Below, in pieces: positions 3,858-39,990 of a stretch of DNA of 64,000 nucleotides; position 1 is the stretch's first letter, and every line of letters begins with the position of its first letter. Source of the stretch: Macrostomum lignano (Eukaryota). The notes beneath the pieces are model-generated. The model saw only the letters and a list, made by a program, of their open reading frames with translations. It made no database searches and had not been told where the DNA came from. The stretch lies in contig NIVC01000615.1 of the NCBI GenBank assembly GCA_002269645.1, positions 212,781 through 276,780 of the forward strand, read 5' to 3'. A program made the translations under genes and the position numbers.

Positions 3858-4780
3858 CTGAATACGACTGCGAAGCGCCGCCACCGCCACCGGCCGCCAG
3901 GTACAGCTGACCGTCGCTCGCTGCGTACAAATGAAGCTGCCGCCGCAGCCAGCAGTCGAGGGGGCTGCCGGGCCGCCTGCCTGACCGACCACGACTGACA
4001 GCTGCAACCCGCCAGTCAGGTTGAAGCTGCCGGCCGCTGAGGCGCCTCTGCCGCCTGATTTGCTTAAGGCAGCGTTGCTGCCTCCGGCCGCTCCGAAGGC
4101 CTCGATGCGGTAGCAGCCGGTGATGTTGATCATCAGGTGCTGGATGATCCCGTTGCGACCCGTGCTCGAGTCTGGGAGAGGCAATTTTATGACCTTGCAG
4201 GTTGAGAGTCCAAGACTTGTCTTGCGCCAAATGACGGTCCATCGAGTCTGGCTTCACTATGAGTCTGGCTTCTCTATGAGTCTGGCTTCCCTATGAGTCT
4301 GGCTTCTCTTTGAGTCTGGCTTCTCTATGAGTCTGGCTTCTCTATGAGTCTGGCTTCTCTATGAGTCTGGCTTCTCTATGAGTCTGGCTTACCAATTGGC
4401 TTCTAGGCCAGCTACAGTACGCTTACTGAACAGAACTGCAGTGAAGTTCTTCAGCTGCCTCTGCTGCACGGTCTGCTCAAAGTCGGCCGCCTTCCACACC
4501 TGCAGCTCGCCAGTCGAGCTGTTGCCGAACCGCCTGGCTACGTGAGTGCATGGCGGTCCCAGCTGCTTCGAGGCGTCATTGATGAAGAGCAGCTCACCGA
4601 GGCCGGAGCTGGAGGCGGCTTCGCAGTTTCTCTTTGAGCACTGCAGCAGGCAGTCAGTAGCTGAGCGCATGCGACTCAGGGTGGCGACCCCGCTGCTGGA
4701 AGCGTCCGTCAGCTCCACTAGCTGCTCAGAGGCGGTGAAGCTGTTGGGATCGACTTCCACTGCGACTGCTGGGAGCAGCA
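3858..4780 (-). pseudogene. PAN/Apple-like + ALK/LTK-type glycine-rich-domain gene, copy 1; exons 4427-4780 and 3858-4171; frameshifted; last exon outside the window
   Basis: Exon 4427-4780 (354 bp, cag|TG...A|gtaag) encodes DCLLQCSKRNCEAA...LQVWKAADFE. Exon 3858-4171 (cag|AC...G|gtagg) encodes NSSTGRNG..GCYRIEAFGAAGG..GGRGA..FNLTGG..VVVGQ. A frame change at TTCATTTGTAC (~3930) is needed to reach YAASDGQLYLAAGGGGG. This exon is 314 bp versus 321 bp in copy 2. An assembly error cannot be excluded. Confidence 0.75.
4245..4390. repeat. 17-bp intronic minisatellite (GAGTCTGGCTTCTCTAT)n
   Basis: About 8 tandem copies filling intron 4172-4426. Confidence 0.95.
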
Positions 4781-4800
4781 CTGTAATGGTGGCATTGTAC

Positions 4801-6334
4801 GATAGATAGATAGATAGATAGATAGATAGATAGATAGATAGATAGATAGATAGATAGATAGATAGATAGATAGATAGATAGATAGATAGATAGATAGATA
4901 GATAGATAGATAGATAGATAGATAGATAGATAGATAGATAGATAGATAGATAGATAGATAGATGGATAGATGGATAGATAGATAGATAGATAGATAGATA
5001 GATGGATAGATGGATAGATAGATAGATAGATAGGTAGATAGATAGATAGATAGATAGATAGATAGATAGATAGATAGATAGATAGATAGATAGATAGATA
5101 GATAGATAGATAGATAGATAGATAGATAGATAGATAGATAGATAGATAGATAGATAGATAGATAGATAGATAGATAGATAGATAGATAGATAGATAGATA
5201 GATAGATAGATAGATAGATAGATAGATAGATAGATAGATAGATAGATAGATAGATAGATAGATAGATAGATAGATAGATAGATAGATAGATAGATAGATA
5301 GATAGATAGATAGATAGATAGATAGATAGATAGATAGATAGATAGATAGATAGATAGATAGATAGATAGATAGATAGATAGATAGATAGATAGATAGATA
5401 GATAGATAGATAGATAGATAGATAGATAGATAGATAGATAGATAGATAGATAGATAGATAGATAGATAGATAGATAGATAGATAGATAGATAGATAGATA
5501 GATAGATAGATAGATAGATAGATAGATAGATAGATAGATAGATAGATAGATAGATAGATAGATAGATAGATAGATAGATAGATAGATAGATAGATAGATA
5601 GATAGATAGATAGATAGATAGATAGATAGATAGATAGATAGATAGATAGATAGATAGATAGATAGATAGATAGATAGATAGATAGATAGATAGATAGATA
5701 GATAGATAGATAGATAGATAGATAGATAGATAGATAGATAGATAGATAGATAGATAGATAGATAGATAGATAGATAGATAGATAGATAGATAGATATATA
5801 GATAGATAGATAGATAGATAGATAGATAGATAGATAGATATATAGATAGATAGATAGATAGATAGATAGATAGATAGATAGATAGATAGATAGATAGATA
5901 GATAGATAGATAGATAGATAGATAGATAGATAGATAGATAGATAGATAGGTAGATAGATAGATAGATAGATAGATAGATAGATAGATAGATAGATAGATA
6001 GATAGATAGATAGATAGATAGATAGATAGATAGATAGATAGATAGATAGATAGATAGATAGATAGATAGATAGATAGATAGATAGATAGATAGGTAGATA
6101 GATAGATAGATAGATAGATAGATAGATAGATAGATAGATAGATAGATAGATAGATAGATAGATAGATAGATAGATAGATAGATAGATAGATAGATAGATA
6201 GATAGATAGATAGATAGGTAGATAGATAGATAGATAGATAGATAGATAGATAGATAGATAGATAGATAGATAGATAGATAGATAGATAGATAGATAGATA
6301 GATAGATAGATAGATAGATAGATAGATAGGTAGA
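4801..6334. repeat. (GATA)n microsatellite, ~1.5 kb
   Basis: Near-perfect tetranucleotide array with a few GATG/GGTA/TATA interruptions. Confidence 0.99.
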
Positions 6335-6335
6335 T

Positions 6336-6404
6336 GGCTACGTGAGTGCCCGGCGGTCCCAACTGCTTCGAGGCGTCATTGATGAAGAGCAGCTCGCAGA
6401 TGCC
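6336..6404 (-). pseudogene. Isolated fragment of a paralogous PAN-domain exon
   Basis: GGCTACGTGAGTGC..GGCGGTCCCA.CTGCTTCGAGGCGTCATTGATGAAGAGCAGCTC matches 4536-4596 with few mismatches. It translates GICELLFINDASKQLGPPGTHVA. Confidence 0.8.
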
Positions 6405-37702: not shown

Positions 37703-38344
37703 TGTCCTATTAATAATATAATTATTCTGTAGTAGAATATTACTGAGCAGTTTCTATTGCAGTGTGAGTTTGTTCTAGCGCTGTCTGTATGCTAGCATGC
37801 AGAGGTCTAACTAATATAATATAGGCATTGAGACAGCGGACACCCAACCCCTTTCAGCCAATAAGGCGCATGGGACAGATAGAGGCCGTCATGACTGCAC
37901 TTAAACTCAAATTTTCAGCATTTATCACTTCTATACCATGCAGTTCTCAACGCAAGAATTTTAATAGAGATTAAGAAATATGAGCCGAATGAGTTTTAGC
38001 TTAGGCAGACAATAAAATTGGTAGCTCTATGGAGCTATTCAAGCCATTATCTGCAGGTGCACAAGCAGAGGCGTCCCGTTACAAGTGCTGTTCATTACAC
38101 AGGTACAGAGTTTGCATCAGAGTGAGTGGGCTATTTTATTCTGACGCAGGATGAAAGCCTTACTCTGGTAGCTTTTGCTGCTTCTCTGCTTAGCGTACAT
38201 TTGCTTGCAACTATTCTTCCAGCCCATCTGTACAGAGAACTTGTACTTTTATGGGAGCCAGACAGGACTAAACTGCCCGTAAATTGCTGTTACTAATCTG
38301 ATTTTTAATTTAGTAAGGTATGGGATATAATATAAGGATACAGA

Positions 38345-38696
38345 GTGACTAAACTTTGTTCTAAACAGAGTGACTAAACTCAGTGCTAACAGAGTGACTA
38401 AACTCATTGCTAACAGAGTGACTAAACTCAGTGCTAACAGAGTGACTAAACTCAGTGCTAACAGAGTGACTAAACTCAGTGCTAACAGAGTGACTAAACT
38501 CAGTGCTAACAGAGTGACTAAACTCAGTGCTAACAGAGTGACTAAACTCAGTGCTAACAGAGTGACTAAACTCAGTGCTAACAGAGTGACTAAACTCATT
38601 GCTAACAGAGTGACTAAACTCAGTGCTAACAGAGTGACTAAACTCAGTGCTAACAGAGTGACTAAACTCATTGCTAACAGAGTGACTAAACTCAGT
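38345..38696. repeat. 24-bp minisatellite (AGAGTGACTAAACTCAGTGCTAAC)n
   Basis: About 14 tandem copies. Confidence 0.97.
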
Positions 38697-38895
38697 GAAA
38701 GTTGGTTAAGTTGGTTAAACTTAACGGATTTAATGGCTGAAATGTTTTAAGAATTTACAGTTATTCACTGTGGAACTGCACAATTTTGTGAGCTATAGCA
38801 TAGCGATCTGGAACCATGCAGAAACTCCAATATCAACTCGATGCGCCTGCACCTCATGCCACAACGGCCCTAGCTGCGCGGGCCAATTCCTTTAG

Positions 38896-39990
38896 AGCTT
38901 GGGAAAAATTGATTGTGTAAGTATTGTATCCGTAGACAACGAAAAAATATTTACAATTCTGACTCGCCCCCAGCCAGGAGTCGCCAGAATCAAAGGCCTG
39001 GACCAGTTGCGCGGCTCTGTGACAGGTCTGAATACAAGCGTCACTCTATACCAGTGTGTGATCTCCTGCTCCGCTCGGAACTGCGCCTTGCTCAACTACA
39101 ATCGGAAGCAGAGAGCCTGCCAGATTCTGCAGATGTTTCCCACACCGCCCGCGGACAGCAAGGACAAGGATAGCTCGGCCGTTTGCACAACTGGTGAAAA
39201 GTCGTCGGGAGGCGGGGACGGAGATGAAGTGTGGATGGCCAGAGACTATTACGAGCGCTCAAACAGGAGCCGCAAGTGGTCATTTATATCGCCAAAGGAA
39301 CATTTTACCGTGAGTAAGGGTGCATTAATGGTCGGCCACGGAATCTACGGACAGCGATAACGTGGGTAGCGGGGCCGCTGGCGGGGCGGCACCTTCGTGT
39401 ACAGGAGCAACGACAGTCGCCTTCTGGTTGCCGCAGGCGGTGGCGGAGGAGCCGCGGTGTTTTTTGACGGTGCGTTGCCATGCCAGTGTGCGCAGCGCAT
39501 TTCCAGCCGCAGCTCGCATCGTCAGCGCCCCACAGCTGCCCCACCCCCTCCTTCCGTTCCAGGAGTTGACGGTCAGGCCGGCGAGAGCGGCGCGAACTCG
39601 ACTGGCGCTGAGTCTGGCGCGGTCGGGCCCGGCGGCGCGAGCGGAGCTCCCGGAGCGTTCGTGAGCGGCGGCGGCCCGGGCGCGGGCTGGATGTTGAACG
39701 GCAGCATCTGCGACCGGTGCGGCAAAGGTCGAGACGGCAGCTGGGCGGGAGGCCAAGGCGAGATCTCCTTTAGGATGGGCGGCTTCGGAGGCGGCGGCGC
39801 TGCCTCTGCCGATGCTGGCGGCGGTGGCGGCGGCTTCAGCGGCGGAGGCGCGGGCTCGACTCAGCAGGCGGGCGGCGGCGGCGGCGGCTCCTTCTGCTCC
39901 GGCAGCGGCTGCAGCGCCACTACGGGCTGCAACACGGTTGACGCCGGCAGAGCCGTCGTGACGCCCGTCGGTCAGGAACTGTGCGTCTGA
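38896..39990 (+). pseudogene. PAN/Apple-like + ALK/LTK-type glycine-rich gene, copy 3; internal deletion and frameshifts
   Basis: PAN-like YQCVISCSARNCALLNYNRKQRACQIL. After the donor at ~39311 the sequence jumps to MVGH..., so the GRNG..G.Y.IEA.GA.GG..GA segment of the paralogues is missing. Frame changes occur before GGTFVYRSNDSRLLVAAGGGGG. A phase-1 intron (39470-39562) sits at the paralogue-conserved position. The last exon is intact (GGFGGGG..GGGFSGG..GGGGGGSFC..LCV*). The 5' end is uncertain. Confidence 0.75.

Follow-up and report, generated by a model that had tools for sequence, protein, structure and literature searches.

A 64-kb stretch (64,000 nt) of Macrostomum lignano DNA, hereafter the window, carries exons for a PAN/Apple-like module next to exons for the TNF-like/polyglycine domain (TG, Pfam PF12810), which is the ligand-binding domain of the receptors ALK and LTK. 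This raises the question of what such a domain is doing in genes in which no receptor can be seen. When the spliced protein of one of these genes, copy 2, was used as a tblastn query against the window, exactly three related loci were found, and the plan common to the paralogues is a PAN-like exon followed by the TG exons. We consider it highly probable that the locus represents a lineage-expanded family of proteins of about 400 amino acids (aa), in which a signal peptide, a PAN-like module and a TG domain are followed by a stop. All coordinates below are positions in the window, which is eukaryotic-looking in character, with many mini- and microsatellites, retroelement open reading frames (ORFs) and split genes.

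An intact gene in copy 2

Judged by its sequence, copy 2 reads as a working gene. It lies on the minus strand at 15029-9049 and consists of four exons with an ORF of 402 aa, every intron being GT-AG and in phase 1. Exon 1 (14984..15029) supplies the ATG and a signal-peptide-like hydrophobic stretch, MHLEFIFAILFTLSN, in front of a phase-1 GTGAGT donor, and was the sole signal-type first exon found by a scan for such exons. At the N-terminus, MHLEFIFAILFTLSNVTNA/EGG, the core is hydrophobic and positions -3 and -1 are occupied by small residues, as judged by eye. Exon 2 (14544..14897; 354 bp) encodes the PAN/Apple-like module with four cysteines (C-x3-C-x4-C-x11-C). Exon 3 (13809..14129; 321 bp) encodes TNF-like strands and the first polyglycine motifs and ends in AAGGGGGATFANN/G, in phase 1, while exon 4 (9049..9536) encodes the glycine-rich half of the TG domain and ends with SGSCV and TGA. 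The stop codon, at 9049-9051, follows the last TG strand, with about 10 residues beyond the strand.

The exon boundaries are backed by UniProt models of homologous proteins, which are given P numbers here. P0001 and P0002 run from the first complete codon of exon 2 up to the exon 3 donor. Across the junction of exons 3 and 4, P0003 reads D-G-RPGQVG and P0183 reads D-G-RPGETG; because of this shared D-G-RPG reading, the acceptor at 9536 was chosen for exon 4 and an in-frame acceptor at 9527 was rejected.

Intron 3 owes its length of 4.3 kb to a truncated gypsy-type long terminal repeat retroelement (9655..13494), with reverse transcriptase-, RNase H- and integrase-like ORFs on the minus strand. 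Direct repeats of 98 nt form its two ends (9655-9752 and 13397-13494); they share 89% identity, which suggests that the insertion is old. Intron 2 contains a perfect transfer RNA (tRNA) T-arm-like motif, GGTTCGATTCCCG (14364-14376, minus strand), inside a tRNA-like stretch. ARAGORN reported no tRNA in the window, and the stretch is possibly a fragment of a tRNA-derived short interspersed element.

Identity of the TG and PAN-like domains

The only PDB sequence matches of copy 2 in a phmmer search were the ectodomains of LTK (E 9e-4) and ALK. For the structural comparison, the paralogue P0004, which is 62% identical to copy 2, was modeled with AF2 from a 38-sequence alignment. The model had a mean pLDDT (predicted local distance difference test) of 77.9, with block means mostly above 85 over the TG part. 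In a Foldseek search of this model against the PDB, the top 21 matches were all TG domains of LTK or ALK, with E-values from 1e-10 to 3e-6 and a TMt of up to 0.67. Both the sequence and the model thus point to homology of the TG domain of copy 2 with the ligand-binding domain of ALK/LTK, with its TNF-like/polyglycine-II fold. This bears out, by way of a paralogue, the domain call of the initial annotation, which had been made from the letters of the sequence.

The PAN/Apple part of the same call stands on weaker lines. The next structural matches of P0004 were the HGF N (PAN) domain (probability 0.97, E 0.35) and then the PAN lectin SML-2, in a region with block-mean pLDDT values of 53-78. In a set of 10 sequences, four cysteines (C40, C44, C49 and C61) hardly vary; all four are present in copies 2 and 3, and the fourth is lost in copy 1. 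In UniProt, three flatworm family members bear the name 'Apple domain-containing protein'. From the four-cysteine core, these names, the weak structural matches and weak profile statistics, we regard the N-terminal module as probably, if not provenly, PAN-like.

No trace of a kinase was seen. The HRDxxxxN, glycine-loop/VAIK and DFG...APE motifs are absent from all six frames of the 64 kb, and the ORF lists of the window hold no kinase-like ORF. A receptor gene with missing exons was rejected as a candidate on the strength of this motif scan. The TG domain is not followed by an EGF-like module, and the PAN-like module lies upstream, where ALK has MAM/LDLa. The earlier statement that copies 2 and 3 lack a transmembrane helix and a kinase is in agreement with these results and with their stops after the last TG strand.

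Copies 1 and 3 and the layout of the locus

Copies 1 and 3 appear from their sequences to be decaying. Copy 1 lies on the minus strand, 4.3 kb downstream of the stop of copy 2. Its PAN-like exon 2 (4427..4780, minus strand; 354 bp) has the fourth conserved cysteine changed to glycine (SGLGELLF). Its exon 3 (3858..4171, minus strand; 314 bp) is 7 bp shorter than that of copy 2, indicating a frameshift near 3930-3939, and has the phase-1 donor at the family position in the downstream frame. With tblastn no last exon was found in 1-3857, a region of satellite sequence, and the exon scan found no signal-type first exon upstream. The nearest M. lignano relative of copy 1, P0010, is frame-shifted in the same region and has the last exon. 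A stray 68-bp duplicate of the middle of the copy 1 PAN exon, GICELLFINDASKQLGPPGTHVA, is located at 6330..6397 (minus strand). It keeps the cysteine that copy 1 has lost and stands directly upstream of a (TATC)n microsatellite of about 1.5 kb (4810-6330); it may be what is left of a rearrangement or of a fourth copy.

Copy 3 is on the plus strand. Its PAN-like exon (38936..39309; 374 bp) has the four cysteines and, unlike those of copies 1 and 2, ends in phase 0. Of exon 3 a remnant is left (39370..39469), the last 100 nt of the exon, which ends in RGRWRGGTFVYRSNDSRLLVAAGGGGGAAVFFD/G, so that about 77 codons of the TNF-like half, containing core strands, are gone. A 93-nt phase-1 intron separates the remnant from the last exon (39563..39990), which encodes the glycine-rich half and ends with ELCV and TGA (stop 39988-39990). 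A possible GT-AG intron of 60 nt would join the PAN exon to the remnant with the frame open. No signal exon was found for copy 3 by the exon scan, and a search with the conceptual copy 3 protein returned no close database relative, the matches being distant PF12810 proteins.

The structural observations of the initial annotation on these genes are thus largely upheld. The PAN exon measures 354 bp in both copies 1 and 2 (4780-4427 and 14897-14544). The phase-1 donor that had been placed at one common position after the AAGGGGG motif lies six codons plus one base past it in 3/3 copies (ATFANN/G, ASQSYS/G and AAVFFD/G), and copies 2 and 3 both end in C-V-stop. The count of one intact and two damaged genes also stands, copy 1 being frameshifted, short of a cysteine and without a last exon, and copy 3 having lost its codons of the TNF-like half. 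That all three copies share the three exon types is true of copy 2 but not of the others, as copy 1 has no last exon and copy 3 retains exon 3 as a remnant.

The copies are old, to judge by their sequences, and deeply diverged. Compared with copy 2, copy 1 has a PAN identity of 28% and copy 3 one of 18%, and exon 3 of copy 1 is 51% identical to that of copy 2. On these identities a recent tandem duplication was rejected as the origin of the cluster, and the proposed fast turnover finds no support in copies so far apart. The span of 3858-39990 described earlier does hold three paralogues; however, the cluster is a loose one, because an ABCG-type transporter gene and an ORF with a BIR domain separate copies 2 and 3. 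Overall, the locus is an ordinary gene-family cluster with pseudogenes.

The family in Macrostomum lignano

The best database matches of copy 2 are UniProt entries of M. lignano itself, with 92-94% identity over partial models, and a full-length 'Apple domain-containing protein' of 419 aa, A0A1I8HRN4, is 62% identical to it. Counting P0249, P0122 and P0183, at least 15 distinct family sequences are present in this species. Many of the M. lignano matches carry a precomputed Pfam PF12810 assignment, including P0001, P0002 and P0005, which are 92-94% identical to copy 2. NCBIfam has no model for the copy 2 protein. Signal-like N-termini are clear in the paralogues P0249 and P0006. The two halves of the proteins differ strongly in conservation: eight Macrostomum paralogues share on average 23% pairwise identity in the PAN exon and 57-60% in the two TG exons, and the sequences thus suggest a fast-evolving PAN-like module joined to a conserved TG core. 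In the same eight paralogues, N-x-S/T sequons are conserved at the start of the TG domain (NSS) and in the NLT strand, and the cysteines are conserved as well.

Some of the gene models are fusions. In P0122 (A0A1I8G307; 2348 aa), two PAN-TG units are joined with a gag-like piece of a retroelement and, at the C-terminus, with a large protein unrelated to them; no kinase segment was seen on reading the sequence. The model indicates that such genes also stand in tandem at another locus and that the reference annotation fuses neighbours. The model P0010 is fused to calmodulin.

The TG fold beyond receptors

According to the initial annotation, the TG domain is normally part of a receptor tyrosine kinase. 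The distribution of the fold argues otherwise. A profile of the TG domain matched 14,489 clusters (50% identity) at E ≤ 1e-3 and 2,751 at E ≤ 1e-30. Its top matches are surface proteins of bacteria, giant in size and carrying as many as eight TG repeats, namely 'glycine-rich proteins' of Flavobacteriia with sorting domains of the type IX secretion system (T9SS) and proteins of Verrucomicrobiota. PEP-CTERM proteins also occur among the homologues. The phage family phrog_22713 matches the TG domain at E 1.6e-23. In BFVD, 67 viral models match at E ≤ 1e-3, among them virion structural, tail-fibre and giant-virus proteins, and the best of these matches (E 2e-15, 29% identity, root mean square deviation 3.8) is better than that of ALK. 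Phage S16 gp38 is a polyglycine adhesin. In the solved tail fibre gp24 of cyanophage Pam3, TNF-like domains together with glycine-rich ones serve in host recognition, and its authors remarked on their similarity to C. elegans ALK (PMC9608196).

Animals, too, have TG proteins without a receptor. Porites corals have proteins with the order signal peptide, PAN_1, a cysteine module of about 50 aa, TG and stop; in other cnidarian TG proteins a signal peptide or an EGF module alone stands in front. The flatworm TG domain is 40-47% identical to that of the coral proteins (E ~1e-21) and 21-24% identical to that of ALK/LTK, and because of this difference the flatworm genes do not appear to be detached receptor ectodomains. 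To judge by sequence, TG is mostly a non-receptor fold and the receptor is the exception in the family.

Kinase-less PF12810 proteins of the flatworm, corals, phages and giant viruses are called 'receptor protein-tyrosine kinase', and others 'PE-PGRS family protein'. Because phage proteins carry the kinase name too, it looks like an automatic label that follows PF12810, a systematic mis-annotation arising from the Pfam link with ALK/LTK. Of the papers returned by our literature search, a single one mentions PF12810 (PMC4859500); it names the domain 'glycine rich protein' and gives no clue to what it does. The search found no work on animal stand-alone PF12810 proteins and nothing on the Macrostomum family.

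Possible function and alternative explanations

Proteins of the copy 2 type would, by sequence, be secreted and N-glycosylated. We infer secretion from the signal-like first exon, the signal peptides of paralogues and coral homologues, the sequons and the conserved cysteines. Outside the cell, the likeliest role of the PAN-TG protein would be binding or adhesion, by analogy with all the settings in which a role of the fold is known: ALK/LTK use it to capture cytokines, and phage fibres to recognise host surfaces. The conserved and rigid polyglycine scaffold would bear the core binding surface, and the variable PAN module would direct the protein to glycan or protein targets on, e.g., mucus, the extracellular matrix or microbial surfaces. 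To such a binding or adhesion role, with a specificity modulated by the PAN module, we give an even chance at best.

A number of points weigh against the overall picture of a secreted PAN-TG family. The exact protein of copy 2, in either acceptor variant, is absent from a collection of 15 billion proteins, so that it is homologous models that support its splicing. The structural model is that of a 62%-identical paralogue, and the signal peptide of copy 2 was judged by eye and from paralogues; the expectation that a signal peptide would be present agrees with the first exon at that level. For the PAN-like module, the best profile match in the PDB is the SML-2 PAN lectin with a weak E-value of 0.43. 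An hhalign comparison with coral PAN_1 gave a weak E-value of 0.054, with the cysteines in register, and no PF00024 is recorded among the precomputed Pfam assignments of the flatworm family members.

Other explanations of the same exons were weighed. The initial annotation had offered a decoy receptor, that is, an ectodomain freed from its kinase that sequesters a factor of the ALKAL/Jeb/HEN-1 kind as a soluble ligand trap. The TG domain is indeed the ligand-binding unit of ALK/LTK, these receptors are the only solved structures that match, and the proteins look secreted. We nevertheless find a trap very improbable, as the identity to the coral non-receptors is about twice that to the receptors, the phmmer match to the latter reaches only E 9e-4, and the chain stops some 10 residues beyond the last strand with no EGF-like module. 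Furthermore, many diverged paralogues with variable PAN modules are ill-suited to trapping a single ligand, and most TG proteins in nature are non-receptors. A structural role, in which the glycine runs would form matrix and not a folded domain, as part of mucus, rhabdites, eggshell or glue, is somewhat less remote, though still improbable. Flatworms secrete abundant mucus and adhesives. The sequence is rich in glycine, has a putative secretion signal and includes a PAN module, a type that also occurs in proteins of mucus, cuticle and adhesion, and all of this would fit. However, a high-confidence prediction packs the glycine motifs into one compact globular TG domain, and they align motif for motif with the ALK/LTK and phage domains. 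The proteins are also small and without tandem repeats, and their TG part is, unlike low-complexity matrix proteins, well conserved among the paralogues.

It is also conceivable that the exons belong to a larger gene, such as that of a receptor, with further exons for a transmembrane part and a kinase, or a fused protein of the kind modeled in UniProt. Long fused models such as P0122 and the calmodulin fusion P0010 could be read in this way; several models bear the name 'receptor protein-tyrosine kinase' and others 'Protein kinase domain-containing protein', which could be taken likewise. We hold this to be extremely unlikely: the in-frame stops of copies 2 and 3 fall where the coral and other flatworm homologues end, kinase motifs are missing from the six frames and a kinase segment from P0122, and the kinase name is also given to phage proteins. 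The preferred explanation thus remains the family of secreted PAN-TG proteins.

The earlier suggestion of an undescribed system has to be withdrawn. Members of the family from M. lignano are in UniProt, so that its sequences and architecture are in public databases under automatic names; PF12810 and its fold are known, and the signal peptide-PAN_1-TG plan of Porites is alike. The copies described here are uncharacterised members of a known fold family. The ligand-binding fold of ALK/LTK is usually described for these two receptors, and the locus illustrates, in an animal, the much larger part of the fold family that lies outside receptors, here with modular, multi-copy and probably secreted proteins. 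M. lignano is tractable by RNA interference and transgenesis and could show what the fold does without a kinase. The locus further exposes a database error, in which kinase-less PF12810 proteins, including those of phages, are named as receptor kinases. A broader and speculative idea, which we think rather unlikely, is that PAN-TG proteins form a family of secreted molecules that has diversified for recognition in invertebrates. They would use the same polyglycine-II scaffold as phages do at the tips of tail fibres and ALK does in capturing cytokines, with the fast-evolving PAN module tuning the target. If this were true, roles in innate immune pattern recognition, in mucus or in gamete recognition might be expected, and ALK/LTK would have recruited, at a late stage, an ancient module for binding outside the cell.

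Other features of the window

The region between copies 2 and 3 contains exons of an ABCG-type half-transporter (18600-32250, minus strand), recognised by eye from motifs only. The ORF 29954-30448 carries Walker A and the ABC signature, 23578-24078 contains the 'IHQPS' region, and pieces of the membrane domain lie near 20715-21221 and 18655-19101, all on the minus strand. The introns of this gene are dense in minisatellites. The BIR (IAP-like) zinc-finger call rests on the motif DGDHVKCFFCDVGLRDWDADDCPELEHVKFSPLCFF in the ORF at 34186-35007 (plus strand).

Beyond copy 3, a GC-rich (65%) non-LTR retroelement occupies 49600-51800, with an endonuclease-like ORF at 49610-51187 (minus strand) and reverse-transcriptase-like ORFs at 50859-51801 (plus strand). 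A bZIP basic region, KNRLAASKCRQKKSDRV, is present in the ORF 56060-56704 (plus strand), which is preceded by a Ser/Ala-rich ORF at 53665-54879; the ORFs in 53665-56704 on the plus strand may form one CNC/bZIP-type transcription-factor gene. An M1-family aminopeptidase N-like gene lies at 59362-62081 (minus strand), with the motifs GMENWG and HEVAHMWFGNLV in the ORF 60621-61664.

Comparison with known systems

The bacterial 'glycine-rich proteins' share the PF12810-type domain with the flatworm proteins and are the highest-scoring matches of the profile. They differ in being giant, with thousands of residues, several TG units and bacterial sorting signals. In phages and giant viruses, as exemplified by Pam3 gp24, the TNF-like part and the polyglycine lattice form a distal receptor-recognition domain (PMC9608196). 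Unlike the flatworm proteins, the viral ones are trimeric fibres with helical shafts and chaperones, and they have neither the PAN module nor the cysteine pattern.

With classical PAN/Apple domains (HGF N, Sarcocystis SML-2 and the apple domains of plasminogen/prekallikrein) the flatworm module shares the core C-x3-C-x4/5-C-x11-C. It departs from them in having only four cysteines, weak statistics (E 0.05-0.4) and a low mean identity among paralogues.

The TG domains of ALK, LTK and C. elegans SCD-2 (PDB 7NX1, 7NX0, 7LRZ, 7N00 and 7LIR) have the fold of the flatworm domain, and no other solved structures match it, either by sequence or by Foldseek. The order of motifs is common to the flatworm proteins and these receptors: Y-I-x-A-x-GA-x-GG, IVVGQ, GGGGGSFVY, LLAAGGGGG, GAGW, GGFGGGGGG, GGGGYSGGG and GGGGGS. 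The flatworm proteins, at about 400 aa and predicted to be secreted, carry neither EGF-like nor MAM/LDLa modules and neither a transmembrane helix nor a kinase; upstream they have a PAN-like module instead.

The proteins of Porites corals (KAM7432210.1, CAH3155743.1 and XP_073250399.1) resemble the flatworm proteins in having a signal peptide, an N-terminal PAN module and a C-terminal TG domain, and a signal-like N-terminus is clear in the coral protein P0096. Unlike the flatworm proteins, those of Porites have the extra cysteine module between PAN and TG. Its PAN module reaches Pfam PF00024 while the flatworm module does not, and the coral proteins are themselves uncharacterised. The whole coral TG domain sits on one exon and has no AAGGGGG phase-1 intron, so the intron is a mark of the flatworm family and not of the fold. 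In both the coral and the flatworm, the modules lie on separate exons and the stop comes just past the last strand.

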